Shown: positions 8,340-35,210, counted from the first letter of the stretch. The stretch: DNA of 64,000 nucleotides from Macrostomum lignano (GCA_002269645.1 NIVC01001794.1:62001-126000); one strand, 5' to 3'. Made by a program: numbers and translations. Notes: generated by a model from the sequence alone, not told the origin.

Positions 8340-9235
8340 TGGCTGAGAGACAGGGGCACCCACCTATAGCTGAGACAGGGGCACCCACCTATAGGAGACA
8401 GGGGCACCCACCTATAGCTGAGACAGGGGCACCCACCTAGGAGACAGGGGCACCCACCTAGGAGACAGGGGCACCCACCTATAGCTGAGACAGGGGCACC
8501 CACCTATCGCTGAGACAGGGGCACCCACCTATAGCTGAGACAAGGGCACCCACCTAGGAGATAGGGGCACCCACCTATAAGAGACAAGGGCACCCAAACT
8601 AAGAGACAGGGGCACCCAACCTAGGAGACGGGACACCCACCTATAGGAGACAGGGGCTCCCACCTATAGGAGACAAGGGCACCCAAACTAGGAGACGGGG
8701 GCACCCACCTATAGGAGACAGGGGCACCCAACCTAGGAGACGGGGGCAGTGGGGGCACCCAACCTAGGAGACGGGGGCAGTGGGGGCACCCAACCTAGGA
8801 GACGGGGCAGTGGGGGCACCCAACCTAGGAGACGGGGCAGTGGGGGCACCCAACCTAGGAGACAGGGGCAGTGGGGGCACCCAACCTAGGAGACGGGGCA
8901 GTGGGGGCACCCAACCTAGGAGACGGGGCAGTGGGGGCACCCAACCTAGGAGACAGGGGCAGTGGGGGCACCCACCTATAGGAGACAGGGGCACCCAACC
9001 TAGGAGACGGGGGCAGTGGGGGCACCCAACCTAGGAGACGGGGGCAGTGGGGGCACCCAACCTAGGAGACGGGGGCAGTGGGGGCACCCAACCTAGGAGA
9101 CAGGGGCAGTGGGGGCACCCAACCTAGGAGACAGGGGCAGTGGGGGCACCCAACCTAGGAGACAGGGGCAGTGGGGGCACCCAACCTAGGAGACAGGGGC
9201 AGTGGGGGCACCCAACCTAGGAGACAGGGGCACCC
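8340..9235. repeat. GC-rich minisatellite (GGAGAC(A/G)GGGGCA(GTGGGG)GCACCCAACCTA-type units, ~20-32 bp)
   Basis: Directly visible tandem array that shifts from short GGGGCACCCACCTATA units to longer units containing GCAGTGGGGGCACCC. Confidence 0.95.
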
Positions 9236-9580: not shown

Positions 9581-12500
9581 ATGGCAGGCGCCATGCTGGG
9601 ACTCTGGCTGGTGCTGCAGCTGCTGCTAACCGGACCTCAAGACGTATTGGCGATTGGAAATTGTTCGGATGCAGTAAGCGATTGACTGACTCACTGGCTT
9701 ATGTAGAATTGCAGTGGCGTAGCTAGGATTTTGAAATGGAGAGATAACTGAAAATGTCGAAGCCATAGTCAAATAGAATAGGGTTTTTGTAATTTTTGCT
9801 TTACGTATGCATTAAAAAAGTACCTTTATCATTACTAATAGGCTAAAAAACTTTCTTAACTTTCTAAAAAAACTGAAAAAGCCGTCAGACATCTGCCCTG
9901 TGACTACGGCATTTTGGGAACTCAGGATTCGCGAAAACATCGTTGTATCCCCCACCCCAGCGACGCAACTGTAGAATTGTTACATTATAAACATTTCTTA
10001 AAAATAATGCTTAATTACACCGTAAAATGTGTCAGTTTGTGCACGTTCTATGAATTACCTCATTACCTACACTGGGGTGCAAAGAACTCAAGAAAAAAGT
10101 TTAGCGTTTAACAATGGAAGGGCCCGTCGACTCTATTCGCTATCAGTTAAGCCAACAAATCGCATGATTCATGCAAACATGGACATGTAAAAGCCGTGTG
10201 ATCACGTGTATTTTAATCATTTTTATGCTGTCTTAAATTATCATAAAAAGTTACAAGTACGCAAGTCATTTACAAAATTAATGCATCTCGGGTGTGTGGA
10301 AAGTGCTCTCGGGTGTCAACACTTAAAAGTTAACTTGGAGTGAACCAGTATGTCTCTCTATTCACCAAGTAGGCCAAGGATCTGCTAGATTCGTAAAATC
10401 ATGTAGGAAAATAAACATCCGCAGTCCTGAACATAACTGTTCAGTATAACAAATACGAGCCAGCACAAAAAATTAAGCGCAAGCTTTAAATTACTTTACA
10501 CAATCAATACCTCAGTGTTTTTAAACATGTAAAAATATTAAAGCGGACGCAAAATTTTAGACTCAAATGTACTGCCCAACAACGAAATTCTGCAAAACTA
10601 TAGAGATCTGCATCGAAGAACTTCAAACCATCGAAAAAAACTGTTCCGAACGAAACATGGTAAGCATGAGGATGCATGTCTGATTCTAATCCCCGAGAAG
10701 TGACTCATGCGTTCAAAAATTAAAACACACTTTCCGCAGAACTTCTGTCCGAAACAAGGATTCTGCTACAACCGAACGCTTTACCTGCCTTGGTCCACTT
10801 GTGACTATGCGAGTGAGAGATGCGACAATTTTACAGACTCAAGCGAGCCTGTCGAACTGGGCCGCTGCTATGGTGGATTCAACTTGTGTCTGGAAAAGAA
10901 GCAGTGCGACCAGGTGTCAGCGAAGAGGTCGTGCCCAAACAACAAGACTATAATCACATCGGTCTCGCCGACTAACTCCTGCTTCGTGCCTGCGACGCTG
11001 AATGTTCGCTTCACCGTTGTGCAGCAGGTAGGTCCACCAGTGATGAGACTCGGGTCCCACCGGCTCGACAACAGCCGCATCGGTCAGGAGATTCAGCTCA
11101 ACAGATTACTCGACAACAACAGCTGCGTGAGCGCAGACGCACTGGGAATGTCTAGCTACGCTGGCTACAATGCGACAATTTCGTGGGTTACGCTGAAGAT
11201 GCGCTTCGTCGACAAGGACAACAACTTGGTTGCCGAGTGTCAGCCTACCTACGGATTCCTGGTTCCGCCGAAGCCAGTACCATCAATTGGCTTCCCGACA
11301 GTGGTAGTGCGAAAGAACGGCACCGCCACTATGTACGACTATCTGTATCCGGGAAATATTCTGAACGCTACTATCGACAAGTCGAATGCATCCGCACCGT
11401 GGTGCGACAGTCTCGGTCGCTCCGAGTTTCCTGGACCCGGACCCAATGACCAGATTCGTCGGCTATGCCGAGAAGGGCCGAGGAAAGCCGCCTACTGCTA
11501 TATTGAAGCACCGAGACTCTATACCGCCTATTCGTTCTACACCTACTCTTATATGGTGGCGCTCCTACCAAACAGTTTGGCTCTGGATATCTCCTGTTAT
11601 CGATTGAAAATGTGCGCATGAGTTTGCACCTCAGACAGCCAGGCGATGCGAATCTGACATGCAGATTGTGGAACGGACTGCTGCCGATGCGCGACACGTC
11701 TCCGGCTGACAGAAGCTACTTTGGAGACGAGATTCTCCGAGTCGAGTACAGGCTAGGCTGCTCCTACGGCTACGAGCCCTGCCTTGTAACTAAAAACTGC
11801 GTCCGAGTTGGAAGTCCTTGTAGAGAGCAGCTCAATTGCAGCATGGTGAGTCTTGAATTTTGTGCACAATTTAAAATTTAATTATTACAGTACTTTCAAA
11901 GTATTGGTTAGAGCTAACTTGCAAATGAAAATGCTATGCTTTTCAGGGAACGATCGACTGCCCAGCGGCGAATAGCTGCGCAAACATCAGCTCGTGCATT
12001 GACAGTATGATTGCGATGGAGAAGAACTGCGCAGCAATCGACCAGGCAAGTACAATATTTATACCTTTTAATTACATGGTTACATACAATTGTAGAGTAA
12101 GCCTAGCGCGTTACATACGTTTCGCTAGTTGGCCTAGAAAATTCAGTGATATACTCGTATACATGTCTAGACGCATTGAAACACACTTTCTACAGAAATT
12201 CTGTCCGAAACAAGGATTCTGCTACAACCGAACGCTTTACCTGCCTTGGTCCACTTGTGACTATGCGAGTGAGAGATGCGACAATTTTACAGACTCAAGC
12301 GAGCCTGTCGAACTGGGCCGCTGCTATGGTGGATTCAACTTGTGTCTGGAAAAGAAGCAGTGCGACCAGGTGTCAGCGAAGAGGTCGTGCCCAAACAACA
12401 AGACTATAATCACATCGGTCTCGCCGACTAACTCCTGCTTCGTGCCTGCGACGCTGAATGTTCGCTTCACCGTTGTGCAGCAGGTAGGTCCACCAGTGAT

Positions 12501-15500
12501 GAGACTCGGGTCCCACCGGCTCGACAACAGCCGCATCGGTCAGGAGATTCAGCTCAACAGATTACTCGACAACAACAGCTGCGTGAGCGCAGACGCACTG
12601 GAATGTCTAGCTACGCTGGCTACAATGCGACAATTTCGTGGGTTACGCTGAAGATGCGCTTCGTCGACAAGGACAACAACTTGGTTGCCGAGTGTCAGCC
12701 TACCTACGGATTCCTGGTTCCGCCGAAGCCAGTACCATCAATTGGCTTCCCGACAGTGGTAGTGCGAAAGAACGGCACCGCCACTATGTACGACTATCTG
12801 TATCCGGGAAATATTCTGAACGCTACTATCGACAAGTCGAATGCATCCGCACCGTGGTGCGACAGTCTCGGTCGCTCCGAGTTTCCTGGACCCGGACCCA
12901 ATGACCAGATTCGTCGGCTATGCCGAGAAGGGCCGAGGAAAGCCGCCTACTGCTATATTGAAGCACCGAGACTCTATACCGCCTATTCGTTCTACACCTA
13001 CTCTTATTATGGTGGCGCTCCTACCAAACAGTTTGGCTCTGGATATCTCCTGTTATCGATTGAAAATGTGCGCATGAGTTTGCACCTCAGACAGCCAGGC
13101 GATGCGAATCTGACATGCAGATTGTGGAACGGACTGCTGCCGATGCGCGACACGTCTCCGGCTGACAGAAGCTACTTTGGAGACGAGATTCTCCGAGTCG
13201 AGTACAGGCTAGGCTGCTCCTACGGCTACGAGCCCTGCCTTGTAACTAAAAACTGCGTCCGAGTTGGAAGTCCTTGTAGAGAGCAGCTCAATTGCAGCAT
13301 GGTGAGTCTTGAATTTTGTGCACAATTTAAAATTTAATTATTACAGTACTTTCAAAGTATTGGTTAGAGCTAACTTGCAAATGAAAATACTATGCTTTTC
13401 AGGGAACGATCGACTGCCCAGCGGCGAATAGCTGCGCAAACATCAGCTCGTGCATTGACAGTATGATTGCGATGGAGAAGAACTGCGCAGCAATCGACCA
13501 GGCAAGTACAATATTTATACCTTTTAATTACATGGTTACATACAATTGTAGAGTAAGCCTAGCGCGTTACATACGTTTCGCTAGTTGGCCTAGAAAATTC
13601 AGTGATATACTCGTATACATGTCTAGACGCATTGAAACACACTTTCTACAGAAATTCTGTCCGAAACAAGGATTCTGCTACAACCGAACGCTTTACCTGC
13701 CTTGGTCCACTTGTGACTATGCGAGTGAGAGATGCGACAATTTTACAGACTCAAGCGAGCCTGTCGAACTGGGCCGCTGCTATGGTGGATTCAACTTGTG
13801 TCTGGAAAAGAAGCAGTGCGACCAGGTGTCAGCGAAGAGGTCGTGCCCAAACAACAAGACCATAATCACATCGGTCTCGCCGACTAACTCCTGCTTCGTG
13901 CCTGCGACGCTGAATGTTCGCTTCACCGTTGTGCAGCAGGTAGGTCCACCAGTGATGAGACTCGGGTCCCACCGGCTCGACAACAGCCGCATCGGTCAGG
14001 AGATTCAGCTCAACAGATTACTCGACAACAACAGCTGCGTGAGCGCAGACGCACTGGAATGTCTAGCTACGCTGGCTACAATGCGACAATTTCGTGGGTT
14101 ACGCTGAAGATGCGCTTCGTCGACAAGGACAACAACTTGGTTGCCGAGTGTCAGCCTACCTACGGATTCCTGGTTCCGCCGAAGCCAGTACCATCAATTG
14201 GCTTCCCGACAGTGGTAGTGCGAAAGAACGGCACCGCCACTATGTACGACTATCTGTATCCGGGAAATATTCTGAACGCTACTATCGACAAGTCGAATGC
14301 ATCCGCACCGTGGTGCGACAGTCTCGGTCGCTCCGAGTTTCCTGGACCCGGACCCAATGACCAGATTCGTCGGCTATGCCGAGAAGGGCCGAGGAAAGCC
14401 GCCTACTGCTATATTGAAGCACCGAGACTCTATACCGCCTATTCGTTCTACACCTACTCTTATTATGGTGGCGCTCCTACCAAACAGTTTGGCTCTGGAT
14501 ATCTCCTGTTATCGATTGAAAATGTGCGCATGAGTTTGCACCTCAGACAGCCAGGCGATGCGAATCTGACATGCAGATTGTGGAACGGACTGCTGCCGAT
14601 GCGCGACACGTCTCCGGCTGACAGAAGCTACTTTGGAGACGAGATTCTCCGAGTCGAGTACAGGCTAGGCTGCTCCTACGGCTACGAGCCCTGCCTTGTA
14701 ACTAAAAACTGCGTCCGAGTTGGAAGTCCTTGTAGAGAGCAGCTCAATTGCAGCATGGTGAGTCTTGAATTTTGTGCACAATTTAAAATTTAATTATTAC
14801 AGTACTTTCAAAGTATTGGTTAGAGCTAACTTGCAAATGAAAATACTATGCTTTTCAGGGAACGATCGACTGCCCAGCGGCGAATAGCTGCGCAAACATC
14901 AGCTCGTGCATTGACAGTATGATTGCGATGGAGAAGAACTGCGCAGCAATCGACCAGGCAAGTACAATATTTATACCTTTTAATTACATGGTTACATACA
15001 ATTGTAGAGTAAGCCTAGCGCGTTACATACGTTTCGCTAGTTGGCCTAGAAAATTCAGTGATATACTCGTATACATGTCTAGACGCATTGAAACACACTT
15101 TCTACAGAAATTCTGTCCGAAACAAGGATTCTGCTACAACCGAACGCTTTACCTGCCTTGGTCCACTTGTGACTATGCGAGTGAGAGATGCGACAATTTT
15201 ACAGACTCAAGCGAGCCTGTCGAACTGGGCCGCTGCTATGGTGGATTCAACTTGTGTCTGGAAAAGAAGCAGTGCGACCAGGTGTCAGCGAAGAGGTCGT
15301 GCCCAAACAACAAGACCATAATCACATCGGTCTCGCCGACTAACTCCTGCTTCGTGCCTGCGACGCTGAATGTTCGCTTCACCGTTGTGCAGCAGGTAGG
15401 TCCACCAGTGATGAGACTCGGGTCCCACCGGCTCGACAACAGCCGCATCGGTCAGGAGATTCAGCTCAACAGATTACTCGACAACAACAGCTGCGTGAGC

Positions 15501-18500
15501 GCAGACGCACTGGGAATGTCTAGCTACGCTGGCTACAATGCGACAATTTCGTGGGTTACGCTGAAGATGCGCTTCGTCGACAAGGACAACAACTTGGTTG
15601 CCGAGTGTCAGCCTACCTACGGATTCCTGGTTCCGCCGAAGCCAGTACCATCAATTGGCTTCCCGACAGTGGTAGTGCGAAAGAACGGCACCGCCACTAT
15701 GTACGACTATCTGTATCCGGGAAATATTCTGAACGCTACTATCGACAAGTCGAATGCATCCGCACCGTGGTGCGACAGTCTCGGTCGCTCCGAGTTTCCT
15801 GGACCCGGACCCAATGACCAGATTCGTCGGCTATGCCGAGAAGGGCCGAGGAAAGCCGCCTACTGCTATATTGAAGCACCGAGACTCTATACCGCCTATT
15901 CGTTCTACACCTACTCTTATTATGGTGGCGCTCCTACCAAACAGTTTGGCTCTGGATATCTCCTGTTATCGATTGAAAATGTGCGCATGAGTTTGCACCT
16001 CAGACAGCCAGGCGATGCGAATCTGACATGCAGATTGTGGAACGGACTGCTGCCGATGCGCGACACGTCTCCGGCTGACAGAAGCTACTTTGGAGACGAG
16101 ATTCTCCGAGTCGAGTACAGGCTAGGCTGCTCCTACGGCTACGAGCCCTGCCTTGTAACTAAAAACTGCGTCCGAGTTGGAAGTCCTTGTAGAGAGCAGC
16201 TCAATTGCAGCATGGTGAGTCTTGAATTTTGTGCACAATTTAAAATTTAATTATTACAGTACTTTCAAAGTATTGGTTAGAGCTAACTTGCAAATGAAAA
16301 TACTATGCTTTTCAGGGAACGATCGACTGCCCAGCGGCGAATAGCTGCGCAAACATCAGCTCGTGCATTGACAGTATGATTGCGATGGAGAAGAACTGCG
16401 CAGCAATCGACCAGGCAAGTACAATATTTATACCTTTTAATTACATGGTTACATACAATTGTAGAGTAGCCTAGCGCGTTACATACGTTTCGCTAGTTGG
16501 CCTAGAAAATTCAGTGATATACTCGTATACATGTCTAGACGCATTGAAACACACTTTCTACAGAAATTCTGTCCGAAACAAGGATTCTGCTACAACCGAA
16601 CGCTTTACCTGCCTTGGTCCACTTGTGACTATGCGAGTGAGAGATGCGACAATTTTACAGACTCAAGCGAGCCTGTCGAACTGGGCCGCTGCTATGGTGG
16701 ATTCAACTTGTGTCTGGAAAAGAAGCAGTGCGACCAGGTGTCAGCGAAGAGGTCGTGCCCAAACAACAAGACCATAATCACATCGGTCTCGCCGACTAAC
16801 TCCTGCTTCGTGCCTGCGACGCTGAATGTTCGCTTCACCGTTGTGCAGCAGGTAGGTCCACCAGTGATGAGACTCGGGTCCCACCGGCTCGACAACAGCC
16901 GCATCGGTCAGGAGATTCAGCTCAACAGATTACTCGACAACAACAGCTGCGTGAGCGCAGACGCACTGGAATGTCTAGCTACGCTGGCTACAATGCGACA
17001 ATTTCGTGGGTTACGCTGAAGATGCGCTTCGTCGACAAGGACAACAACTTGGTTGCCGAGTGTCAGCCTACCTACGGATTCCTGGTTCCGCCGAAGCCAG
17101 TACCATCAATTGGCTTCCCGACAGTGGTAGTGCGAAAGAACGGCACCGCCACTATGTACGACTATCTGTATCCGGGAAATATTCTGAACGCTACTATCGA
17201 CAAGTCGAATGCATCCGCACCGTGGTGCGACAGTCTCGGTCGCTCCGAGTTTCCTGGACCCGGACCCAATGACCAGATTCGTCGGCTATGCCGAGAAGGG
17301 CCGAGGAAAGCCGCCTACTGCTATATTGAAGCACCGAGACTCTATACCGCCTATTCGTTCTACACCTACTCTTATTATGGTGGCGCTCCTACCAAACAGT
17401 TTGGCTCTGGATATCTCCTGTTATCGATTGAAAATGTGCGCATGAGTTTGCACCTCAGACAGCCAGGCGATGCGAATCTGACATGCAGATTGTGGAACGG
17501 ACTGCTGCCGATGCGCGACACGTCTCCGGCTGACAGAAGCTACTTTGGAGACGAGATTCTCCGAGTCGAGTACAGGCTAGGCTGCTCCTACGGCTACGAG
17601 CCCTGCCTTGTAACTAAAAACTGCGTCCGAGTTGGAAGTCCTTGTAGAGAGCAGCTCAATTGCAGCATGGTGAGTCTTGAATTTTGTGCACAATTTAAAT
17701 TTAATTATTACAGTACTTTCAAAGTATTGGTTAGAGCTAACTTGCAAATGAAAATACTATGCTTTTCAGGGAACGATCGACTGCCCAGCGGCGAATAGCT
17801 GCGCAAACATCAGCTCGTGCATTGACAGTATGATTGCGATGGAGAAGAACTGCGCAGCAATCGACCAGGCAAGTACAATATTTATACCTTTTAATTACAT
17901 GGTTACATACAATTGTAGAGTAAGCCTAGCGCGTTACATACGTTTCGCTAGTTGGCCTAGAAAATTCAGTGATATACTCGTATACATGTCTAGACGCATT
18001 GAAACACACTTTCTACAGAAATTCTGTCCGAAACAAGGATTCTGCTACAACCGAACGCTTTACCTGCCTTGGTCCACTTGTGACTATGCGAGTGAGAGAT
18101 GCGACAATTTTACAGTCTCAAGCGAGCCTGTCGAACTGGGCCGCTGCTATGGTGGATTCAACTTGTGTCTGGAAAAGAAGCAGTGCGACCAGGTGTCAGC
18201 GAAGAGGTCGTGCCCAAACAACAAGACCATAATCACATCGGTCTCGCCGACTAACTCCTGCTTCGTGCCTGCGACGCTGAATGTTCGCTTCACCGTTGTG
18301 CAGCAGGTAGGTCCACCAGTGATGAGACTCGGGTCCCACCGGCTCGACAACAGCCGCATCGGTCAGGAGATTCAGCTCAACAGATTACTCGACAACAACA
18401 GCTGCGTGAGCGCAGACGCACTGGGAATGTCTAGCTACGCTGGCTACAATGCGACAATTTCGTGGGTTACGCTGAAGATGCGCTTCGTCGACAAGGACAA

Positions 18501-21500
18501 CAACTTGGTTGCCGAGTGTCAGCCTACCTACGGATTCCTGGTTCCGCCGAAGCCAGTACCATCAATTGGCTTCCCGACAGTGGTAGTGCGAAAGAACGGC
18601 ACCGCCACTATGTACGACTATCTGTATCCGGGAAATATTCTGAACGCTACTATCGACAAGTCGAATGCATCCGCACCGTGGTGCGACAGTCTCGGTCGCT
18701 CCGAGTTTCCTGGACCCGGACCCAATGACCAGATTCGTCGGCTATGCCGAGAAGGGCCGAGGAAAGCCGCCTACTGCTATATTGAAGCACCGAGACTCTA
18801 TACCGCCTATTCGTTCTACACCTACTCTTACTATGGTGGCGCTCCTACCAAACAGTTTGGCTCTGGATATCTCCTGTTATCGATTGAAAATGTGCGCATG
18901 AGTTTGCACCTCAGACAGCCAGGCGATGCGAATCTGACATGCAGATTGTGGAACGGACTGCTGCCGATGCGCGACACGTCTGCGGCTGACAGAAGCTACT
19001 TTGGAGACGAGATTCTCCGAGTCGAGTACAGGCTAGGCTGCTCCTACGGCTACGAGCCCTGCCTTGTAACTAAAAACTGCGTCCGAGTTGGAAGTCCTTG
19101 TAGAGAGCAGCTCAATTGCAGCATGGTGAGTCTTGAATTTTGTGCACAATTTGAAATTTAATTATTACAGTACTTTTAAAGTATTGGTTAGAGCTAACTT
19201 GCAAATGAAAATGCTATGCTTTTCAGGGAACTATCGACTGCCCAGCGGCGAATAGCTGCGCAAACATCAGCTCGTGCATTGACAGTATGATTGCGATGGA
19301 GAAGAACTGCGCAGCAACCGACCAGGCAAGTACAATATTTATACCTTTTAATTACATGGTTACATACAATTGTAGAGTAGGCCTAGCGCGTTACATACGT
19401 TTAGCTAGTTGGCCTAGAAAATTCAGTGATATACTCGTATACATGTCTAGACGCATTGAAACACACTTTCTACAGAAATTCTGTCCGAAACAAGGATTCT
19501 GCTACAACCGAACGCTTTACCTGCCTTGGTCCACTTGTGACTATGCGAGTGAGAGATGCGACAATTTTACAGACTCAAGCGAGCCTGTCGAACTGGGCCG
19601 CTGCTATGGTGGATTCAACTTGTGTCTGGAAAAGAAGCAGTGCGACCAGGTGTCAGCGAAGAGGTCGTGCCCAAACAACAAGACCATAATCACATCGGTC
19701 TCGCCGACTAACTCCTGCTTCGTGCCTGCGACGCTGAATGTTCGCTTCACCGTTGTGCAGCAGGTAGGTCCACCAGTGATGAGACTCGGGTCCCACCGGC
19801 TCGACAACAGCCGCATCGGTCAGGAGATTCAGCTCAACAGATTACTCGACAACAACAGCTGCGTGAGCGCAGACGCACTGGGAATGTCTAGCTACGCTGG
19901 CTACAATGCGACAATTTCGTGGGTTACGCTAAAGATGCGCTTCGTCGACAAGGACAACAACTTGGTTGCCGAGTGTCAGCCTACCTACGGATTCCTGGTT
20001 CCGCCGAAGCCAGTACCATCAATTGGCTTCCCGACAGTGGTAGTGCGAAAGAACGGCACCGCCACTATGTACGACTATCTGTATCCGGGAAATATTCTGA
20101 ACGCTACTATCGACAAGTCGAATGCATCCGCACCGTGGTGCGACAGTCTCGGTCGCTCCGAGTTTCCTGGACCCGGACCCAACGACCAGATTCGTCGGCT
20201 ATGCCGAGAAGGGCCGAGGAAAGCCGCCTACTGCTATATTGAAGCACCGAGACGCTATACCAATCATTTTTTTCACGTGTACTCTTACAATGGTGGCGCT
20301 TCTGTCAGACAGTTTGGCTCTGGATATCTCCTGTTATCGGTTGAGAATGTGCGCATGCATTTGCGGTTGGGTCAGCCAGGCAATGTGAATCTCACATGCA
20401 AATTGTGGAACGGACTTCTTCCTGTGCAGGACACGTCTCTGACTGACGGCAACTACTTTGGAGACGAGATTCTTCGAGTTAAGTACGAGATTGATTGTAT
20501 TTCAGGCTTGTACCCGTGTCTGTCAGCTCCAGCCTGTCTTCCAGCTGGCACCTCGTGTCGAGAGCGCAAGAAGTGCACCTTGGTAACTAGTTGGACTTTA
20601 TTGTTTCGGAATACTTCCCAAAGCAAATTTAGAAACAATTTTGTTCGGCTAGAACTGATGACGCATTTGTATTTAATCACAGGGTGAGTTCGACTGTCCT
20701 GCTGTTAATGGCTGCGCAAACATGAGCACCTGTTTAGAACGTCTCATGGCTTTGGAGGAGCAGTGTTCTTTAAATGGATTGGTGAGTGCTTGTTCGTTTC
20801 TTGTTTTATGTTACAGATATGTGTATTAAAATATCTTTATGTGCATCTACGGCGTTCGTATACATTTTAAAAAATATACTGAAGGAAGTGTAACACATAG
20901 CTACCAATGATCATATATACACAAGAAGGGCCACTCATTAGCCACTTATGTGGCCATAGAGGCTAATGTAAAAAAATTGAGACTCGCGATAGCGACAAAA
21001 TCAACTACTGAACTCTGTTTCGTTAGCAGTCTCTGCAGTGTATGGATAATTCTTAGTTTGATTGAGTATCTTTTTATTCAATTCATGAGAAGTTCTATTA
21101 AATTCTCAAAAAAAACGTTTATGTCGCAAAGCTACTGAACTCAAATTTATAAGCAACCCTGTCGGCTTTTTCGTACAAGTGACGAAAAACAGCGCTTGCA
21201 CTTTCCCTATTACCGCCATACAAAGTGGCCTACCTGGTATCTAGGGAATATAAGATCTATGATAGCTACCCTTAGAGAAATCATTTTTAGTACATACACT
21301 CAGCAACATTGAAAAGTTTCCACCCTAGCGCGCGAGGGTCAACGTTTTGGTGGGTGGAAATATTCGTGGTTTGAGCCATAGACAAATATATAATCCGGAT
21401 TCGAACGAGGCAAAGGAACAGCAAAGAAACAAAGTACGCGAGCATGGGTGACAACTTGCCCAGAACAGGGTCAGTAACGCGTATAGCAGCCACGTGCGTC

Positions 21501-24500
21501 CAGCAGAGCGCTCACTCTCCGGGGCATCCCCAGAAACAGGCGTCGCAGAAAGTCTTGCCGTAGTTGTTGCCATGCAGTAGACAGTGATTCGCGCAGTTGG
21601 GCAACGTTTTGCGGCGGATTTTCGCGCCGAATCGAGCGCTTCAGGTAATCCCAGCGTCCAGCATGCCAATGGCGCGCGCTCGTTCCAGGTCGGTCATTTG
21701 GCGAAGCATTGCGTTCGGTTGCGAACATGGATTTTAGACTCCTGTAAGCTGCTGCTGTCTGCTCCATGTGACTGTTTTCTTCGACCTGTCTGGCGTCTAT
21801 TACCCAAGTTTTTGTCTATGGCCCAAGTGCGTGTTGACGAAATCATCAATCGTCTATGGCACAAGTCTGGCGACAAAACCAGTTTTGAAACTCTTTGGTA
21901 ATTTTGGTAACTTTGGTGACTTTTCAATTTTGCTGAGTGTATGAGGACTATAGCAGTCTACTGGTTCCCTCGGTTTTTAATAAACTACATGTAGCTTCTC
22001 GCCCCTCAGCCTTGACGCCTCAGCATTCCCCCCAGCAATCCTTGACATCTCAGCAATTCCCTCCGTCAGCCTTGAAATATCAGCAATTCCGTCAGAAGAC
22101 CTTGACATCACAGCAATTCTTTCCAAGAGTCACAGCATTGAAGCAATTCCCCCAAGCCTTGACATCGTAGGTATTCCAAAATATTTACTTGAATGACGAT
22201 TTTAATCAAAAAATTACGCGACTAAGATTTGAACCACTAAGCTAGGGACGAAAATTACTTATGTTAACCCTTAAAAATAAAAGCACATTTTCTTAAAAGC
22301 ATTTTGTCTTCAGTTTTACAAATCATTTTATTCCATTAAAATTATCAGGACAAGGAGTTTTGCTATAAATCTCTTTTTATTGAAAAAAACAAAAAAACAA
22401 CAAAAGAAAGTTGAATAGATAAAGATAAGAAGCATTCCCCCCCAATAGTAAATAACGCAATACTAATTTACGCTTAATTAGAAAGTTTAAGGCTTAAGAC
22501 CTTTAAAAAGTTCGTGCATAAATAAATAGTCCGAACCTCGCTATGAATATTAGATTAATAGCCGAAACAATTCTGAAATGATTTGCTCGATTTTCGATCC
22601 AAGAAGCCAGAAATGTCAGCAATTTGATGCACTCGCTCCTTAAAGTGTCAAAAATTGCAGCAGAAAAATCTTATCTGTAATATTTTACACATACTACCAT
22701 GCGAAAACTATTGAAAACTAACAGTTCTGAGGGCATTGCCAGCATCTAGAGATCTTTGAAAATAGGAATTCTAATAAAATGATACTCATTTCATGCTAAG
22801 GTGATTCTTTAGATTTGATCTCTCCAAAGCCTTTCAATCTTACACCTCTCCAATATTCAGAAATCGTGTACAAAACAAGGAATCTGCTACAACAGAAGTG
22901 TTCACATGTCTTGGGACGACTGCAATTACATGAACAGCCCGTGTGACAATGCCACCAGCACCAGCACTGATCCTCTGATCCGATGCTATACCGGATACCA
23001 CATGTGTCTAAGACAGATACAGTGCGATGAAGTGGAGGCAAAGAGGTCGTGTCCCAACAACAAGACCATCATCACGTCCGTGTCGCCAACAAACTCCTGC
23101 TCCATTCCTCCGCGTCTGAATTTTCGCTTCACCGTCGTGCAGCAAGTGGGTCCTCCAGTGATGAGAATCGGATCCAACAAGCTCGACAACAGCCGCATCG
23201 GACAGGAAATTACACTCGACAGGCTTCTCGATAACAACAGCTGCGTGAGCGCAGATGCTCTGGGAATGTCCAACTACGCCGGCTCCAATGCGAGTCTATC
23301 GTGGGTAAAGCTGAGGGTTCGCTACTTCAACAAGGACAACAAGGTAGTCGCCGAGTGTCAGCCTACCTACGGATTTCTGCTTCCGCCGAAGTCGCGACCG
23401 CCACCAGCTGGATTTCCGACAGTCGTGGTAGAAAAGAACGGCACTGGATCCATGTATGACGATGTCTACCCAAATAATATTTTAGGTCCAGTATTGAACC
23501 AGTCTACAGCCTCTGCCCCGTGGTGCGACAGTCTCGGTTTGCCCGAGTTTCCCGAATCCGCTCTCAACGACCACGTTCGTCAGCTGTGTCGAGAGGCGCC
23601 GAGCAAGGCTGCCTACTGCTACATTGAGGCGTCGTCGCTCTACACCGAATATTCGTTCACGCCTACTCCTACTATGGCAGTGCTCCTGTCAGAAAGTTTG
23701 GCCCAGGATACCTATCGCTTTCTGTTGACAGCTCTTACTTTAATGTGCAACTCAGACAGCCAGGCAGTGTGAATTTTACATGCAGACTGTGGAACGGACT
23801 GCTGCCGGAGCAGGACACGCCTCCGACTGACGGAAACTACTTTGGCGACGAGATTCTCCGAATTCAGTATTCATCCATCTGCTATCCTGGATATGTTCCC
23901 TGTTTGGCTTCAAAGACTTGTATTCCTTCTGATAATTTGTGCGAAGCGCCGACAATTTATCCTCGTACAACAATCGGTCCAGAAACTACAAATGATCAGA
24001 TTACTACAGAGAAGCCTAAGGATTGCCGATACAAAGTGGGTACAAGCAACTTTATGATTTATTCGAGTCGTTCCAACTTCATGAAACCCATTGCTGTCGT
24101 TTTGCACAGGTTTCCTGCCCACCCAGCGGTCAACTACTCTGCAAGGCTGCTTGTGTGCTGTCTCTTGTCGATCAGGGTGCACGGTGCAACGCACAAGGCA
24201 AGGTAGGTATCAAAATGGCTGTTTTTTTAGCTTTTTAGCTTCTTTAGCTTATTTTTCTCGACAATACGAGCTTCGCTCGTATCTGTGAGAATGCTACAGC
24301 TGGGTCAAGCTTCTGTGCGTCTCTGCCTCAAAATTTCACGATATGCGAGGGCGCCAATGAGGTAAGCAACAGAATGCATTCTACTGAATGCCTACTAATT
24401 TTTTGAGTTACATTCGTAGCAGGTAAAAAAGCTCATTGTTTGTATTGCTAATGCGCGGTGACGAGATTGCTTCATTCAAAATGCTCATCCTTAGACTGCC

Positions 24501-27500
24501 TGTCCTCACGCATTCGGTGCCTGCTTGGACTTTGCCAATTGCCGTCAATTGTGTCCTCGCCCTCATCGGCTTTTGCCAGCTGCTCAGCTCGTTTCTGGCT
24601 TCAAGGGCTTGTACAGGGATGCTCCGGACCCCGGCGTCTGTCGCACAGGTCACCTTCTTGGCGCTGCGTCTGCCGCACGCATCAAAGTAATTTTTGTTAG
24701 CCCGGCATCCGGTACTGAGATGGAGTTGGATGGTCGCAAAATCAACGTCAGCGGAAGTCCAGAGCCGATCAGACCCGACAGTTGCTTCCAGCTTCTCTTA
24801 CACGGCGCTCAAAATGTACTCATCAATCTCACGTACTCGCTGCTACTTCCGGACGGATCGGAATGCGTTATGAGAAGCTTCGTGCTCCTACCTCCGAGAG
24901 CTTTACCTCCCAATGTGACACTGAATAAATCCAGCCTCAGCGTCATGGACACCTCTGTGCTGGATGTGTCTCTCTCCACAGTGCTGGTGTTGAGTCCAAA
25001 CGGTTTCCCGAGCAGCAGCGTGTGCGATCTAAGACTTAACAACGTAATTGATCTGCACTGTGAGCGAAGTCTCTGCAACATGCGCTCAAGGGTTGAGTTC
25101 TCGACTGTCGGTGGCGTGTTCTGCAAGTACATGGTGCAGCCAGTGTGGTAAGTTTACTCCTGCTACGAAGGTAGAGGCGGCACATTGCTGCCAGAACAAT
25201 GTAAGAAATGTAACAAGAACCGAAACATAAATAGATTTTTCGGTTTAATACTTGAAATAATGGAATAAAAGGAGAATGAAAAATATCTCATGTGAATTGT
25301 TTTGGTTCAAGTATTATACTTCAGTATATACATAAATATAGTGTAAACGTAATTTGTGTAACTTCCAGGTCTGACATCTACGGAAACCTGACGTTCCGAA
25401 GTGGAGTCACGACAAGCGGTATCAACGAGTACATGAGAGGCTTTCTCGTTCCGAGTCCAAGCCAAGCCAACATCCGATTCGAACCAAATCGCAATGCCGC
25501 TACCAAGACCTTCGTTCTGATGTGCCAGGCTTGGAGTGGACTGCCGCCTCGCTTCAGCTACACCAGCTCTGGTTCCCTTGTTCCATCCGTCCTTCCTTTT
25601 ACAGCCATGGGTGGGATAGTCAAAGTCACAATCAGCGTGCTGCACAAGGAGCAGCCTCCTCTTGTGAATAAAGATTTCTTCTCTGTTGGTGTTCTCAAGG
25701 ACAGGGAGAACGAGTACGTGAGTCAGAAATTACAGCGAGAGCGAGGCTTCATGCTGCAACGGCATGGAGAAAACTACGTCACTCAGATTCGGGTCGGCGA
25801 CATGGTTTCACTGTTCTTTTGTGACGATAATACATTTGAGTTGGGCGCTCTCGTTCTACAAGGCCTCGGCGACGATGCAAGTGGTGTTCTGGAGTACCAG
25901 CTGCCGAACTCCATGTCCTGGCAGACTCTGAATGTATCCGCTGACAAGCCTGCGTTTAAGCAGTATCGCATGCTCTCGCGTTTTAAGGACTCGGCAAAAA
26001 CTTCGGATGCCTTTTCAACCATCCAGTGTTTGGGAAGCATCTCATCTACATCTTCCTCCACGCTGCAGCTCTCTGACTTCCTAGCAAATGGCGTCAACGG
26101 TACGGGGCCTGTCACAGCGATGTTCCTCCCGGCCAACGCTACGATCCGATTTCGGCCAACCGTCCCGGCGTCCTGGTCCCGCAGTCGCGCCATCCTTGCT
26201 TTTACAGCCGCAGAGAAGCTGGTCGCCCAACAACAAGTCTACATCAATCCACTCGTTGTCAGTAGCGTGGTCAACAAAAGTGCAGCTGCTGGATGGGCAG
26301 TTGTCCGTCCAGTGACGGTTGGCTGCGACAATCAGCCATGGTCAGGTCTCCAGACTGATGTCTGTAAAATCTGTGGTGGAAATGGTCGCTCATGCATCGA
26401 CTGCAACGGTGATGCAAATGGCACAGCGATCTGGAACGACTGTGGCAACTGCGTTGGTGGAAGAACTGGCAAAGCCATGCGTTATGGAAAGGACTGCGCT
26501 GGTCGATGCAACGGATCTTTTGTCTCGCCAATGCCTGGCCTGTGCTACAATTCCAGTCGATTTGCGACTGCTGATGAGTACATCAGATCGGTGTGGTGCG
26601 ATGGTAAAGTGAACAGCACTGCGCGCATCAATAAGTGCGGCTTCTGCACCGAGGGAAGCACCGGAAGAGCGGCCAACTTCGGCGTAGGACCCTGCGGCTG
26701 CAGCAACGACACTTCCTGTATCACAGGCTGTGACAGTGTCGCTGAGCCATCGTTGTCGTCCCGAAAGACTTACGATAAATGCCGTCGTTGTCTGCTGCCC
26801 AGCGACCCGCAGAGAGACATCTGTGCTCGGATCCACTTCACGATTACCCGAAACGCTTGCGTGGGGTCATACGCTGCTTATCAGCAAGTGACAATCAGCA
26901 GCAGCAGCATCAACCTTACAATCAGCTCAATCACTCTGCGCCTGCTGAAAGTGACCGATTGGGTAAGACATCAATTCCATTTTTGCAATAATATAACTAA
27001 AGGCTCTTTTACGTACACCGCTATCAAATTGCACAAATGTAAATTACACGACGATGTAAAACGCGGCGAAAAAAATAGTACAAGCCGTTTATCCTGATAG
27101 TGACGATTAATGGCCTAATTTAGTGGCAACGCGCCTAAAGGTTTACTTACAGATGTATTTACAGATGTAGATTTAGGCGATTATTAGCAAAATAGATAGC
27201 AAGTCCAGCAATACTCAAAATTTATAAGCTTCAATTGATAACTTTGTAATTTACGTTGATAAAATACAAACTACTTCTTCCGCCCTCACATTGACAGTCG
27301 CTCTACACGGAGCTTCAAGCAATATCCATCGATGTATCTTCTGGTCTGTTCCGCTTTTCTGTGCCCTCGGGTCTCGTTGCTCGCGAGTACGCTCTACAGG
27401 TTAAATACTTGACCGCTTCCGGTGCTACAGTCATCGAGGACGTTTCCGGTGGAACCTTGACTGTTTTTGGAGCTCCCAGCTTGTCCAGCTTGAGTGTCGG

Positions 27501-30500
27501 GAGCAGACTCACGCTAGAAAATCCCGTTTACTCTCTGCCAGTGAGCGGACAGGGATTCGTCAACACGCCCGATCTCGTCTGCCTTCTCTACTGCGACGAT
27601 CTTAGCCGCCACACCCGATGCGACCCGCGCACTGGCTTTCTCACTGTGCCGGCCAGATTCGACAGCGCGACAAGCGTCACCTGCAATATCTCTGCGCTGG
27701 CCGAAGTCCGACAGTCGCTGCAATGGAAGCTCAGCGTCATGAACTGCAAGCTGCAAACACTTAGCTACGATGCATATGCGGTGTTCAAGTGAGTGGTTTG
27801 TTTTTATTGCTGCAAGTATGAATGCAATGATTTACACCAAGTGACACATCGGTTACACCTCTTGCAATCACCGACCAGGCACAACTCTCTGCCGTTCTCG
27901 ATCCGCTCGAGTAAGGGTCCGGTGCTGCTCTCAGCAACTGATGACGCTAGTGGCTACCACCTGTATCTCCAGTTCGACACAAACATCCAGCTGCGACAGA
28001 CGGCGTGCTCGGCCATCTTTGATGCGTCGACTTTTGCGCTGGCCCAAAGTGCTACGCGAGGGCAAACGCTCTCATCGTGTGGAAAGGACGTGGCGCAACA
28101 ATCTGCTCTGGCTCTCGAATCAGCATCAATTCGAATATCATTTATGTGGGTGGCAGCGACATCAGCCTGGCCACCAGTTCCAGTGTCAGCACCGCTGTTG
28201 TGAATGCAAACGGTCGGAAGCCACCTGTCATCTTTTTGGCCGGAGTTCAATCAGATGCCAACCAGGTGGCCACCGTCGGACTCTGTGACTCGTTCAACCT
28301 GTATGCCACCATCAGAGGATCGATGGTGCAGCAGATCACTTGGGACATCCGGTGTGCTGCAGGCTCAGCTTGTCAAGCAACTGAGCTGGCCGCATTCCAG
28401 TCAAAGTTTTCCACAGAAGTCACTTTCTACGCCGGAAAGGATGTTAGTGATCTCAAGCGCTTAAGTCAGAAGATATTACTCAAAAAAAATTATAATATTT
28501 ACAGTCTCAAATCTTGCTTTATTCTTCAGATTCCGCCTGGGGAGTCATACAACATCACGGCTTCTGCCCAGAACGAATGCGGAACACAGTCGAATACGGC
28601 GAGCATCATAGTTAAACGACTCGTTGAAAAAACGCCATTTAGCATTAGTATCTTCGGACAGCAAAAGTATGTGAAGCCCGATCTTTGGTACAGCGCTGTG
28701 CTTTTTGTACGACCGTCATTTTGCTATACCAAGGCTATCGGCACTCTGAGTGTAAGTAACAGTACTCTGAGAACGCTTATTGTATAAATCATGCATCATA
28801 GTATGATAAGAGAAGCAAAATTTGCAACAAAATCTCAATGAGCATATCTCTGAAATGTCTTAGCTCGTACTATCGAATATAAAGTACACCTGCTGTCTGC
28901 TATACAATAGTATACCTTTAGGCTCTTGCACCTACACTGCCATCAGGCGTGATTCTCCACATTTTAATTTTGCAGTACAAGTGGAAGATCGTCGGTGGCA
29001 CCAGAGCCATCAATGTGGACCAACAGGCGATCACAGGTAAATTCTTCCGACTGAGATCTGGAGTCCTGCAAGGAGGCCAGTCCTACAACCTGAGTGTCTG
29101 CGCTTCCATGCCGACTTGGCCCAACGTGGCGTGCGGCTTTTTGCTTCTGGAGACGATCAGCCGCCCTCTGGTTCTCATGTTCGTCCGCGGAGGTCGCTCT
29201 GATCTCGGCGTCAGCGATGCACTGCAGGAATCCGTGTACATCATCGATCCAGACTACTCGACTGAGACGACATTTTGCACCTTCTATCTGACCAAGTGGG
29301 CCAACGGTGAGGCAATCTACATGCGCAACATACACACTGGGACCATGCTTCTTCGGTTCGGATGGAACTCAGACATCATCGAACAGTATCCAAGTGCCTT
29401 GGCCGGATCCCAGTGTATACGAGCTACCCTCAGGCTTCATGAACCTCACTGTGAGTTGTCAGCGGGGTCAGCGACGGTCCAGTCGTACAAAGCTTGTGCA
29501 GATTTTGTCTCGTCCGCCTCCATCAGTCCGGATCTTGACCGAGCCGAGCAACAAACCAATCAATCCAAACGCTGCTGTCCCGGTGACAGCTTTAGTGATT
29601 TCCAGTGAGATCACTCAGACTCAATGGTCTGTGGATACTCAAGAGACTGGCTTTGGCTCGCTGTCGCTTCAGCAGTGCTCAGTAGGACCGCCGCTGACCG
29701 ATACATGCGTACCCAATCGACGCTGCTTCATCACTTTGGTTCTTAAGCCAGGACGAAGCTGCAGCTTTGCTGCCGGTGTCTCCTACCGACTGCTTTTGAT
29801 CGCCAGCGCCAGTTCCGGGACCGCTCAGGCCCAGTTCGACTTCCGCGTGAATGCATCACTGTCTGTGACTCCCAGTCAAGGAGCCGCTCTGGAGACACCC
29901 TTCACGCTCACCATATGGCCGAATATCACTGACGATTCCGACGTGTCCTTCAGTTACAGCGCCATGTGCTGTCGCCAAGATTCATCAAGCCAGTGCGTCA
30001 GCGTAACTAGTGAACCAACACCCGCTAGACTGCTCACCACTCGTCTACCTGGAGGAAACTGGATCTGCAAAGCTTCAGCCATCGACTCTAACGGAGCAGG
30101 CTCCGATTGGTTCTCATTTACTACTGTAATTCAGGTGCAAGCGAAGCAGCTGACGCTTGCCAAGCTCGACGATTTACTAAACAACTTGAACAATATTTCA
30201 AACAGCTGTGAGGGCGATTAAGTTAGCTCGTATTTCCTATTTCTATTTAGCTTCGAATTCAAATTAACTAGGTATCCATTTGATATATTGTATTGTAGTT
30301 GACGGTCCAGCACTATGCGGAATGATCCTGAGTGAGCCAGATACTGGCCTGTCGTCCGAGGAAAAGAACAAGAAGAATTAGCTGGTGCAGGAACTGGTGA
30401 TTCGGGATCTTCTGACTTTAGACACAAGGTATATAAGTCATGCTAAATAGTAATACACTTTTTTAACAGAAAACCAACCTGTCAATAGTGTAAAATAACT

Positions 30501-32930
30501 AAAGGGCAGTATTATATTCAAACTTTATCGATAATTTCAGTGTGCCATCGGTTTCCTGTCTCAGGGCTGCAACAAGCTGTCAACTGTTTCGGAAAACGAG
30601 AGCCAACAGCCAGTATATAACTAACTTGGTACTGAACACTCTTAAAAAGTGCCTTGATGCGTTTCATTCTCAGTCGTTTTCACCAGCTTCGCCAGACAGC
30701 GCAAAAAGAAGGCGAAGGCGCAACGCGTCGGGATCTCAGCGTGGAACAACAAGCAAAATAACTGCCACTGAAGTGAAGTCCGTCCTCGACATCGCATCCG
30801 GAGTCTATCACTCCACGCTCGATTCGACAACAGCTGCTGATATCCAGGCTACAATTCTTAACACCGTTCCTGCCTTCTGCAACAGTCAAAATCCGAACTC
30901 GCTAGCTCAGGCGGCAGCATCCACAATGACCGTTGTACGCGTGTACAAGACGTCTTTCAACTCAGTCGGTTCAGCCAATCTGGAGATGGGATGTGACTCA
31001 GGAAGCACCGACTGTCTATCCAATTTCACAGTCCGTCAACAGGTTGCACTTGGTGCCGATCTCGAGCAGCGCTACTATAACTGGTCATGTGGCCAGACTG
31101 ACTGCTTCCAGGACGGTGCCTGCATCGGAACCATCCTGCTGGACAAGGATCTGCTCACTCCACAGGCCAAAGTGGCTTCTCCGACGATTCCCCCGCGACG
31201 CAGTCCTCTGGCCTACGTAGGAATATTTCACCCGAGCGACGGTGCGAACCAGAATGTTTCACGCCTCAGCAATGGTGTGACTATCACCACCAACATCAGT
31301 GGCTCTGTGAATCTTAGTAGCATCAGCCTCATCTGCCGTAGCTGGAGCGGAGCCGACTGGACCCCGGATAACTGCACGACTCGCGCGCCATTCCAGACCG
31401 ACGATGGCATCTGGCACGTAACGTGTGTGTGCCATGACATATCTTCATTTATTGGCGTTTTTGAGGGACCACCAGGCTTCCAACCGGAGACAACCATCGC
31501 TCCATCTACCACCGAAAGTGAGATTGGCCAGGCAAGGACGACGTTTGAAACAACACTTGAATCTCGCTTAACGACTACAATTTCGGAGATGCATACCTCA
31601 TCTGTGTCTTTTTCGAGTACCATCACTTCTACTCAGGCACCCAGTAGTACGTCTGCGACACTTTCGAAAGCGCCGAGTTTGTCTAGCACTTCTCAGAGTA
31701 CGATCACTTCTACTCAGGAATCCACTAGTACGTCTGCGACGCTTTCGAAAGCGCCGAGTTTGTCTAGCACTTCTCAGAGTACCATCACTTCTACTCAGGA
31801 ACCCACTAGTACATCTGCGACACTTTCGAAAGCGCCGAGTTTGTCTAGCACTTCTCAGAGTACCATCACTTCTACTCAGGAACCCACTAGTACGTCGGCG
31901 ACACTCTCAGAGACGCAAACTTCAGCTGCAACGCTTTGGAACAGCATCACGACGACTATATTACCCCGTGTAACGGCTCCGACACTCTCAGAGACGGACA
32001 CTATAGCTGTGGCACTCCAAATTAGGGTCACAGAGTCATTCTCTAACGTCGTTACAGACGAAAGCCGCCTTCAAGGCCACCTGACGAGTCAGCTTGCGCG
32101 TCAGCTAAGGCTCGCTGAGTCGCAACTAACCGACATGCAGTTTGCAAATGGCAGCGTTCTTATCAGTTTTACCGTCAACAGTCAGTCTGGTGCCAACACT
32201 AGTGCTTCCTTCGCTGTTTATTTGCTGGTGCAGCTCATGAACAACCGCCAGCTCGTACTACTTGGCCTGAGCAACAGCAGCCTGACGGTCTCCTGGGAGT
32301 ACCTGCGGGTGCTGGACGTAAAAACAGCTATGCAGCCTACTGTAAGGACTAGCAGCAACAACACCAACATTATTTCCATCTCTGTTGGTGCTTCGGTTGG
32401 TGCCCTTTGCCTAATTGGGACTTTTATAGTAGTCCTTCTGCTTATGCGAAGGAGCAACCGAAACTCTAAAGTCCCAGAAGAACATGAGAGCAACTTAAGG
32501 AATGATTGGAATACGGTGCGTGACCCGAGAGCAACGGATACAAGTTGGCCGGTCGGTGTTATTCCAGTCAAGTTTGCACCACCCCGTTGGAAAACGGTAA
32601 GGAGCTCTTTCGGTGGGCTACATTTTTTGTTTGCGAGCGAAGCTGTACGTAGTAGGGACTTTATTGCACACACTGTTCTATAGGGTTTGGTCTTCATATT
32701 AAAAACTATGCGACTCAATCACAAATGAACGTGTACTCGCTCACAAGTAAAAAAAGATTTCTTAGTGATATTTGTTCTGAGAAATTGATTTTAATATTTT
32801 TCATTACTTGCATCAACGCGCACCCGTGTCCTTCCTACGACAGGAAATTCTCAGGGAGACGGGTCCATCGCAAAGTCGAGAGTCGAGAGCTGAGCGAGTA
32901 AGGGAATGGAGCAACTTGAAATACTATTAA
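9581..32930 (+). CDS. Giant multi-exon type I membrane protein: tandem Cys-rich modules + DxCGxCGG repeats + REJ/GAIN-GPS-like region + mucin stalk + SEA-like domain + 1 TM
   Basis: Exon 1 9581-9673 encodes signal peptide MAGAMLGLWLVLQLLLTGPQDVLA (donor GTAAGC, phase 0). Module exons start at 10740, 12196, 13652, 15108, 16564, 18019, 19476 and 22861, each followed by a small exon. Further exons: 24110-24202, ~24249-24362, ~24493-25148, ~25369-26962, ~27298-27789, ~27879-28442, 28530-28752, ~28977-30207, 30299-30428, 30541-32596 and 32844-32930 (ends NLKYY*). Splice phases are consistent throughout. TM at ~32370-32445 (IISISVGASVGALCLIGTFIVVLLLM-RRSNR). Contains several 1-nt indels and one in-frame TAG. 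Confidence 0.75.
9712..9971. mobile_element. Non-autonomous hAT-type MITE in intron 1
   Basis: Left end CAGTGGCGTAGC, right end GCGACGCAACTG (2 mismatches to the perfect TIR), exact 8-bp TSD TAGAATTG (9704-9711 and 9972-9979). Confidence 0.8.
10740..20781 (+). repeat. Coding tandem array, ~1456-bp period, 7 units (1107-bp exon, 101-bp intron, 99-bp exon, 150-bp intron)
   Basis: Large-exon starts 10740/12196/13652/15108/16564/18019/19476 give spacings of 1455-1457. Exons and introns are near-identical up to ~20250. Confidence 0.97.
21297..21939 (-). mobile_element. Internally deleted Tc1/mariner element
   Basis: TIRs CACTCAGCAA(C/A)ATTGAAAAGT at both ends, flanked by TA (21295-96 and 21940-41). 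Minus ORF ends WDYLKRSIRRENPPQNVAQLRESLSTAWQQL...MPRRVSALLDARGCYTRY (Tc1 C-terminus). An N-terminal HTH-like fragment remains; the DDE core is missing. Confidence 0.88.
21995..22170. repeat. Short degenerate satellite CCTTGACATCTCAGCAATTCCCC
   Basis: About 5-6 imperfect copies; reverse complement of the array at 51870-53610. Confidence 0.8.
31619..31905 (+). repeat. Coding 81-bp (27-aa) Ser/Thr mucin-like repeats
   Basis: TITSTQ(A/E)(P/S)(S/T)STSATLSKAPSLSSTSQS three times plus a partial fourth copy, between the GPS-like motif and the SEA-like domain. Confidence 0.9.
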
Positions 32931-35012: not shown

Positions 35013-35210
35013 TGGCGTCCCTGGCACTGGCGTCCCTGGCACTGGCGTCCCTGGCACTGGCGTCCCTGGCACTGGCGTCCCTGGCACTGGCGTCCCTGGC
35101 ACTGGCGTCCCTGGCACTGGCGTCCCTGGCACTGGCGTCCCTGGCACTGGCGTCCCTGGCACTGGCGTCCCTGGCACTGGCGTCCCTGGCACTGGCGTCC
35201 CTGGCACTGG
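35013..35210. repeat. 15-bp minisatellite (TGGCGTCCCTGGCAC)n, ~13 copies
   Basis: Perfect tandem array; it explains the low-complexity ORFs at 34865-35249. Confidence 0.97.

Follow-up and report, generated by a model that had tools for sequence, protein, structure and literature searches.

How does a gene come to encode the same large extracellular module many times in a row, and where in such an array do new copies appear? We examined this question at a locus in a 64,000-nucleotide (nt) stretch of Macrostomum lignano DNA (GCA_002269645.1 NIVC01001794.1:62001-126000), which is referred to below as the window and whose positions are counted from its first nucleotide. A first-pass annotation of the window had described an array of two-exon modules that gained new copies at the N-terminal, membrane-distal end and that behaved like an accordion of variable length. 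Our analysis indicates with good probability that the locus is the 5′ half of an M. lignano gene for a type-I single-pass membrane glycoprotein with a recently amplified module array. All features of this gene given below lie on the plus strand.

Organization of the module array

A repeat search of the window gave seven copies of one unit at 10.7–20.6 kb, spaced 1455–1457 nt apart, and a diverged eighth copy 3.4 kb beyond them. The pattern of the seven units is a large exon (L), a 100–101-nt intron, a 99-nt small exon (s), and a 149–150-nt intron. The large exons L1 to L7 start at positions 10740, 12196, 13652, 15108, 16564, 18019, and 19476, respectively. The last pair ends with s7 (20683–20781), a diverged small exon of 99 nt with a GT donor, and an intron of 2079 nt separates it from the old large exon L8 (22861–24035), which is 1175 nt long, i.e., 1176 nt minus 1. 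The exon table gave canonical acceptors and donors with all splice sites intact, a length of 99 nt for the small exons, and a position between codons (phase 0) for all splice junctions of the array. The consensus unit comprises 402 codons (1107 + 99 = 1206 nt), and both of its exons start and end in phase 0.

The first-pass annotation had assigned all module exons lengths of 1107 and 99 nt and phase 0 at both ends. This was correct for the 99-nt exons and for the junctions, but L1, L2, L3, and L5 are 1106 nt as assembled and L8 also deviates. Furthermore, the array does not begin at 10740, as had been proposed, but one small exon earlier. This diverged first small exon, s0 (10561–10659; 99 nt), contains four Cys residues and a CPTT signature and was matched by a hidden Markov model (HMM) of the small domain with an E value of 4e-19. 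It is preceded by exon 1 (9581–9673; 93 nt, end phase 0, donor gtaagc), which carries the start codon and the signal peptide (MAGAMLGLWLVLQLLL...) and was located by tblastn with the N-terminus of the paralogue P0006. The order in the protein is a signal peptide and then eight repetitions of a 33-residue mini-domain with four Cys residues and a Cys-rich, beta-rich, heavily N-glycosylated domain of approximately 369 residues. The first ~3300 residues of the product, repaired as described below, contain 197 Cys residues and 86 N-glycosylation sequons.

The small exons of the six near-identical units, hereafter the young small exons, all use the GC donor gcaagt (at 12046, 13502, 14958, 16415, 17869, and 19326), whereas s0, s7, and the homologous contigs of other samples have a GT donor instead. 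The presence of the GC donor in six of six young small exons indicates that the amplified unit took a weak donor into every copy. An example of these GC-AG introns, at 12046–12195 with the donor gcaagt, is 150 nt long, free of stop codons, and a multiple of three. The same holds for the 150-nt introns after the young small exons, retention of which would keep the frame and add 50 residues; the chance of such introns being stop-free is approximately 9%.

Identity among the units and edges of the young block

Units 1 to 6 (U1–U6) are near-identical including their introns, as first described, and only 14 of ~1460 aligned columns differ among them. Repeat and identity comparison delimited a young homogenized block that consists of L1-s1 to L6-s6 and the first 775 nt of L7 (10740–20254). 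Measured from ~10,743 to 20,254, the block amounts to 6.5 units of 1457 nt with an identity of at least 99.4%, counting the introns. At its 5′ edge, the high identity begins only ~20 nt before L1, and the upstream intron and s0 are old. On the 3′ side, the description of unit 7 as part identical was borne out, because L7 was 99.7% identical to the consensus up to 20,254 and identity then dropped abruptly to 72.8% in its old 3′ third (20255–20582). L8, rightly recognized as clearly diverged, was 74% identical in its 5′ part and 66% identical in its 3′ part (about 72% overall). Within the block, U2–U5 were the most homogeneous and identical apart from indels and one substitution, and U1 and U6 were slightly more diverged, each with private substitutions.

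The number of synonymous substitutions per synonymous site (dS) was 0.51 between the consensus and the L7 tail, 0.85 between the consensus and L8, and 1.12 between the L7 tail and L8. The ratio of nonsynonymous to synonymous rates (dN/dS) was 0.57 for the L7 tail against the consensus and ranged over 0.26–0.57 among the old-unit comparisons. These values indicate that the old units evolved as coding sequence under purifying selection. In regards to the young units, their near-identity including the introns points to recent unequal crossover or gene conversion.

Domains downstream of the array

The REJ-domain exons (28976–30206) were matched by Pfam PF02010 with 39.1 bits for the raw open reading frame (ORF) and 42.8 bits after splicing, against a cut-off of 25 (E = 3.6e-11, profile positions 176–428 of 452). 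The last exon (30503–32683) encodes a GPS-like motif, S/T-rich repeats, a transmembrane helix, a short tail, and the stop codon. The GPS-like Cys/Trp motif, CRSW..W..C...CVCHDISSF, was seen by eye at ~300 residues from the transmembrane helix and had no Pfam GPS match. Between this motif and the helix, positions 31615–31958 are occupied by an 81-nt (27-residue) Ser/Thr-rich tandem repeat in approximately four copies with 94% identity, which forms a second, mucin-like length-variable element of the array gene. The single hydrophobic helix (~32378–32446) is followed by ~75 residues and a stop. A PLAT domain and a multi-pass body were absent according to Pfam and to the presence of only one hydrophobic helix, and no Pfam matches to C-type lectin, EGF, or PKD repeats were obtained in the protein. 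The combination of a REJ domain with one transmembrane helix and neither a PLAT domain nor a multi-pass body indicates a single-pass REJ-domain membrane glycoprotein. No proteins were returned by a homologous-protein search with the REJ region or by PDB sequence searches with the REJ and GPS regions. The probability that hhalign gave for the module profile against the REJ region was 0.1%, which indicates that the modules are not detectably REJ-derived.

The M. lignano gene model P0007 (UniProt A0A1I8FVC6) is 98–99% identical to the unique exons. Three paralogous copies, ~98% identical, exist for approximately 70% of the Mlig_3_7 assembly (PMC10733133), and P0007 would fit either the same locus or one of approximately three such subgenome copies. 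A 40-nt GT-AG intron (29394–29433) is required to join two frames in the REJ region and agrees with P0007, which indicates that introns of that small size exist in this genome. Long coding-looking open stretches (PSLSSLSVGSRLTLENPVYSLPVSGQGF...) were also observed at 27298–27788 and 27793–28048, inside the 1087-nt intron of P0007.

Distribution of the module family

Among 1.84 billion representative proteins, an exhaustive profile search matched seven, namely four M. lignano gene models, two ORFs (P0003 and P0005) from short environmental contigs, and one marginal match (E = 6.5e-04) that is an unrelated repetitive protein. Judging from these matches, the module family is restricted to Macrostomum. 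The automatic names of the M. lignano gene models P0007, P0006, P0004, P0009, and P0012 refer to ZP, EGF-like, disintegrin, ShKT, and GON domain-containing proteins; Pfam did not reproduce these names in the two models that were scanned (P0006 and P0007). Truncation or frame-shifted stretches affect several gene models of the family.

In short-read contigs of three further samples, we observed intact phase-0 large exons of 1152, 1128, and 1110 nt, and a 99-nt exon followed each such large exon wherever the contig reached that far. The contig L001 (Logan SRR28338156, positions 1–1744) carries one large and one small exon, the protein of which is 57–60% identical to the window module. Its ends overlap by exactly 30 nt, which indicates that the contig is a collapsed tandem repeat with a period of 1714 nt. 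Contigs encoding P0006 and P0007 were not on record, and a metagenome scan with the module alignment gave no confirmed locus. Literature searches that covered REJ, receptor for egg jelly, and polycystin found nothing relevant on this family in Macrostomum; to the extent of these searches, neither the module family nor its connection with a REJ-type receptor has been described.

Single-base deletions and the reading frame

As assembled, only L4, L6, and L7 are intact, and each of the other five of the eight large exons is short by a one-base homopolymer deletion, a fact overlooked in the first-pass annotation for all five. The deletion in L1 is TT→T (tattat→tatat) at 11551–11552, with the first in-frame stop at 11619. 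That in L2 is GGG→GG at 12598–12601, and the identical deletion is found in L3 (~14056) and L5 (~16968). The deletion in L8, CC→C, lies near 23655. Five single-base repairs gave 3487 open codons with no stops. The two intron indels between units are homopolymer contractions too, so that every between-unit indel is a one-base deletion in a run, with only ten substituted columns alongside. An exact look-up of ten window ORFs, intact and frame-shifted, found none of them in the short-read assembly collection. The Mlig_3_7 assembly was produced from PacBio reads with Canu and polished by Pilon with short reads (PMC5730564), and multi-mapping read pairs account for 93% in that M. lignano genome (PMC10733133). 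We consider it rather likely that the five deletions are uncorrected long-read consensus errors, the repeat being beyond polishing with short reads.

Several observations weigh against reading the locus as a functional gene for a long modular glycoprotein. The spliced coding sequence as assembled ends at codon 358 (11619), with five large exons out of frame, and the GGG→GG deletion common to L2, L3, and L5 could be a real mutation that was propagated among the units. The module had no match in Pfam. The AlphaFold model of the large domain was beta-rich and of mediocre quality, with a predicted local distance difference test (pLDDT) score of 61.7 and values of <50 at the Cys-rich ends. A Foldseek search with the module model recovered nothing beyond generic pilins and adhesins of the two-beta-sandwich kind, with a template modeling (TM) score of <0.2, and no fold was assigned. 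From its architecture, the protein may serve in recognition or adhesion as a long extracellular stalk of variable length.

If the deletions were real, the window copy would be a decaying homeologue, turned into a pseudogene after the recent M. lignano whole-genome duplication, and the array would be a relic. The premature stop, the five frame-broken exons, and the deletion shared by three units are all expected from such decay, the necessary redundancy exists in the three ~98% identical copies of ~70% of Mlig_3_7 (PMC10733133), and frame-breaking indels number five in ~9 kb of array large exons versus none found in ~6 kb of unique exons. However, the disruptions are exclusively one-base homopolymer contractions, with no insertions, larger indels, or nonsense substitutions, and only 10 substituted columns are found among U1–U6, with the splice sites all intact. 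Moreover, P0007 is open across the L8 site and yet disrupted elsewhere where the window is intact, which suggests independent assembly noise, and the short-read contigs of other samples contain intact exons. We therefore regard decay of this copy as doubtful and prefer consensus errors in an otherwise open gene.

Paralogue comparison and direction of growth

In the paralogue P0011 (A0A1I8J2W3), the signal peptide is followed by s0, the old unit M1, the hybrid M2, and M3–M6. M3–M6 are 100% identical, and M2 is 91% identical in its 5′ part and 100% identical in its 3′ part. The CPTT signature is common to the s0 of the window and the s0 of the paralogue. The amino acid identities of L8 were 87%/78% with M2 of the paralogue versus 68%/59% with the window's own units. 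L8 is thus nearer to the amplified type of the paralogue, which indicates that the two genes amplified different module types after their separation. The young block of P0011 lies behind old N-terminal units, and its arrangement is therefore opposite to that in the window. In P0007, the last array unit has its hybrid junction 20–29 codons further 3′ than in the window, which points to separate events of conversion or crossover at the edge of the array. The array of P0011, the closure of L001, and the shifted junction of P0007 together indicate that amplification recurs.

These data also bear on the direction of growth. The first-pass annotation had held that modules are added at the N-terminal, membrane-distal tip and leave a polar age gradient. 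Divergence from the young consensus does rise monotonically towards the membrane, from the L7 tail (dS 0.51) through L8 (dS 0.85) to the possible ninth unit discussed below, where it is at or near saturation; however, the chance of a monotonic order among four lineages is ~1/12. The old s0 caps the 5′ side of the young block, and in P0011 the identical M3–M6 are preceded on the N-terminal side by the old M1 and the hybrid M2. The affinity of L8 to the amplified type of the paralogue rather than to its own units is at odds with a simple gradient, as is the finding that U2–U5 are the most alike and that U1 and U6 are both slightly diverged. Growth at the N-terminal end is improbable on this evidence, and a homogenized core (U2–U5) with older edges is the usual pattern of arrays.

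It is likewise improbable that assembly of a neopolyploid, repeat-rich genome created the array, or its copy number, through over-expansion or mosaicism: although U2–U5 are identical save indels and one substitution and paralogous regions in published assemblies of M. lignano include collapsed, expanded, and mosaic ones (PMC10733133), U1 and U6 have private substitutions, both edges are unique junctions, independent gene models of the paralogue have a comparable array, the unrelated short-read contig L001 closes on itself, and the array, at only ~10 kb, is within long-read length.

Recurrent local amplification and homogenization of an internal unit, neutral to the reading frame, is the interpretation supported by these comparisons of sequences. 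In the mechanism that we propose, one module type would have been amplified very recently via homologous unequal crossover or gene conversion, and the product would be the 6.5-unit block, nearly identical including its introns, with older module parts at both sides. Each unit would add 402 codons, and the reading frame would be kept at any copy number. The paralogue has undergone an independent amplification of a different module type at a different position, and the same amplification process probably operated in another species too. Of the accordion-like ectodomain that had been suggested, frame-neutral and recurrent unequal crossover is thus retained, whereas addition at the N-terminal end is not.

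A putative ninth module

The exon at ~24493–25148 had been said to look like a very old ninth unit of the phase-0 array. Mapping with P0007 placed this exon at 24495–25147 (653 nt), where it starts in phase 0 and ends in phase 2, a W codon being split by the intron 25148–25368. Failure of profile alignment had been named in advance as evidence against a ninth unit, and the exon did fail the local and profile tests. No match to the module was obtained within 24495–25148 by tblastn against the window, the module profile gave a probability of 0.2% and an E value of 0.32 against the exon by hhalign, and a 16-sequence HMM found nothing at E ≤ 10 in the proposed unit by hmmsearch --max. Smith-Waterman alignment with shuffles on this exon gave z values of 1.2–1.4, which were no better than those of control exons, and a homologous-protein search with it returned no matches. 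AlphaFold prediction of the exon alone, from the single sequence, was unusable (pLDDT 32).

A weak hhalign match (E = 0.068) was observed between the C-terminal part of the module and the beginning of the following exon, whose first ~110 codons (25369–25705) are colinear, with the right spacing, with module residues ~255–360 (LMCQAWSGLPP versus LTCRLWNGLLP). Because of this weak colinear match, we performed a true global alignment of seven modules, trimmed to the first conserved Cys motif, with 24495–25147 spliced to ~110 codons from 25369. A semi-global alignment with free end gaps was uninformative, as the sequences slid apart. The global colinear alignment had a summed score of 300 with a sharp peak at offset 0; the shuffles scored −89 ± 75 and none of 300 reached 300, and the best of 89 natural or reversed control windows scored 134.5. 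Nine Cys-Cys columns were aligned, a count attained by 6 of the 300 shuffles. The alignment makes it somewhat likely that 24495–25705 is a very old, degenerate, remote homologue of the module, which would be longer than the exon originally proposed. Since the phase-2 intron interrupts it, the putative ninth module is not a skippable phase-0 unit.

Two further segments lie between L8 and the exon at 24495. The segment 24110–24202 (93 nt) has four Cys residues and good splice sites and was considered as a ninth small exon; it was rejected, being unmatched by the small-domain HMM and unused in P0007. A 62-nt candidate exon at 24300–24361 encodes FC..NFT..C, which resembles the start of the large module; it is out of phase and is also unused in P0007.

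Other features of the window

The window is eukaryotic in character, with short GT-AG introns, many minisatellites, and a GC content of 29–52%. A minisatellite of 22–31 nt (~17 + 17 copies) is located at 8347–9232, ~350 nt before the array gene's start codon. A 30-nt minisatellite in the long intron between s7 and L8 (22006–22119) recurs in reverse complement as the unit of a 28-copy array at 51906–52753, 30 kb downstream. A perfect 15-nt repeat (TGGCGTCCCTGGCAC) is present at 35013–35210 in 13.2 copies with 100% matches. A 12-kb tract at 43994–56000 consists almost entirely of minisatellites, including a 29-nt unit repeated 78 times and an 89-nt unit repeated 11 times with 99% identity. The 30-mer noted above occurs at 49514–50161 and 54585–55769 within this tract, and the GC skew reaches +0.5 at 52–56 kb. 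A second gene on the plus strand (38625–42910) contains Sushi/CCP-domain exons (PF00084; E = 3e-9, 0.008, and 0.001).

Discussion

The array shares several properties with the KIV-2 array of LPA. Both consist of a head-to-tail two-exon module with near-identical exons and introns, and in both a homogeneous core lies amid older diverged modules (KIV-1 and KIV-3 to KIV-10 in LPA; s0, the L7 tail, s7, and L8 here). The frame is kept at every copy number in LPA and would be kept here with the consensus unit, five of eight large exons being one base short as assembled. Both also share an origin by unequal crossover, which is inferred for the window. The LPA KIV-2 units are 5.5 kb, with exons of 160 and 182 bp, and occur in 1 to >40 copies (PMC4378929). 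In contrast, the window unit is 1.46 kb with tiny introns (100–150 nt) and encodes a ~402-residue module with no assigned fold. Each window exon is in phase 0 at both ends, whereas the two exons of the LPA unit preserve the frame only when taken together. Variation in copy number is well documented in LPA; for the window array, the only indirect sign of it is the shifted hybrid junction of P0007.

Coding minisatellites, the variable number tandem repeats (VNTRs) of mucins, and the SRCR repeats of DMBT1 undergo concerted evolution, and their copy number sets the length of the protein. The window gene resembles DMBT1 and the mucin VNTRs in its tandem repetition of extracellular modules. Unlike the mucin VNTRs, its repeats are folded modules of ~400 residues spread over two exons and not short low-complexity repeats in a single exon, although a mucin-type short repeat is also found within the gene at 31615–31958.

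In regards to the remainder of the protein, suREJ1 is the single-pass, REJ-domain sea-urchin sperm receptor for egg jelly and has a large modular ectodomain. The window protein is similar in its REJ domain, single transmembrane helix, GPS-like Cys/Trp motif, and large modular ectodomain, but differs in that no C-type lectin or EGF modules were found in the Pfam scans. Its layout is nearer to that of suREJ1 than to that of polycystin-1. Unlike polycystin-1 and PKDREJ, it has no PLAT domain, no body of 11 transmembrane helices, and no Pfam PKD repeats, and it stops after a short tail. The GPS-like motif, which Pfam does not detect, is parted from the membrane by the mucin-like repeat. Moreover, the N-terminal modules are restricted to Macrostomum, unlike the REJ and polycystin relatives.

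We offer only as a speculative candidate role that these Macrostomum-specific REJ receptors act as gamete- or partner-recognition molecules of the hermaphrodite, with the length of the ectodomain tuned by frequent unequal crossover, which would make copy number polymorphic among individuals and homeologues, and by a regulated omission of the symmetric exons during splicing. The stop-free, in-frame 150-nt introns and the weak GC donors of the young small exons would belong to that regulation.

Current assemblies and gene models are also unreliable at this locus, where the models are truncated or frame-patched. Provided that the animal itself carries an intact array, this would be a clean invertebrate counterpart of the LPA KIV-2 array, in which whole folded modules of ~400 residues are gained or lost without a change of frame. 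Expansion took place separately in two paralogues, and some observations point to continuing conversion between the homeologues of a neopolyploid. The REJ family is otherwise linked to sperm-egg signaling and to the polycystins. A new, unannotated extracellular module tied to a REJ-domain protein is a candidate for work on reproduction and adhesion in Macrostomum.

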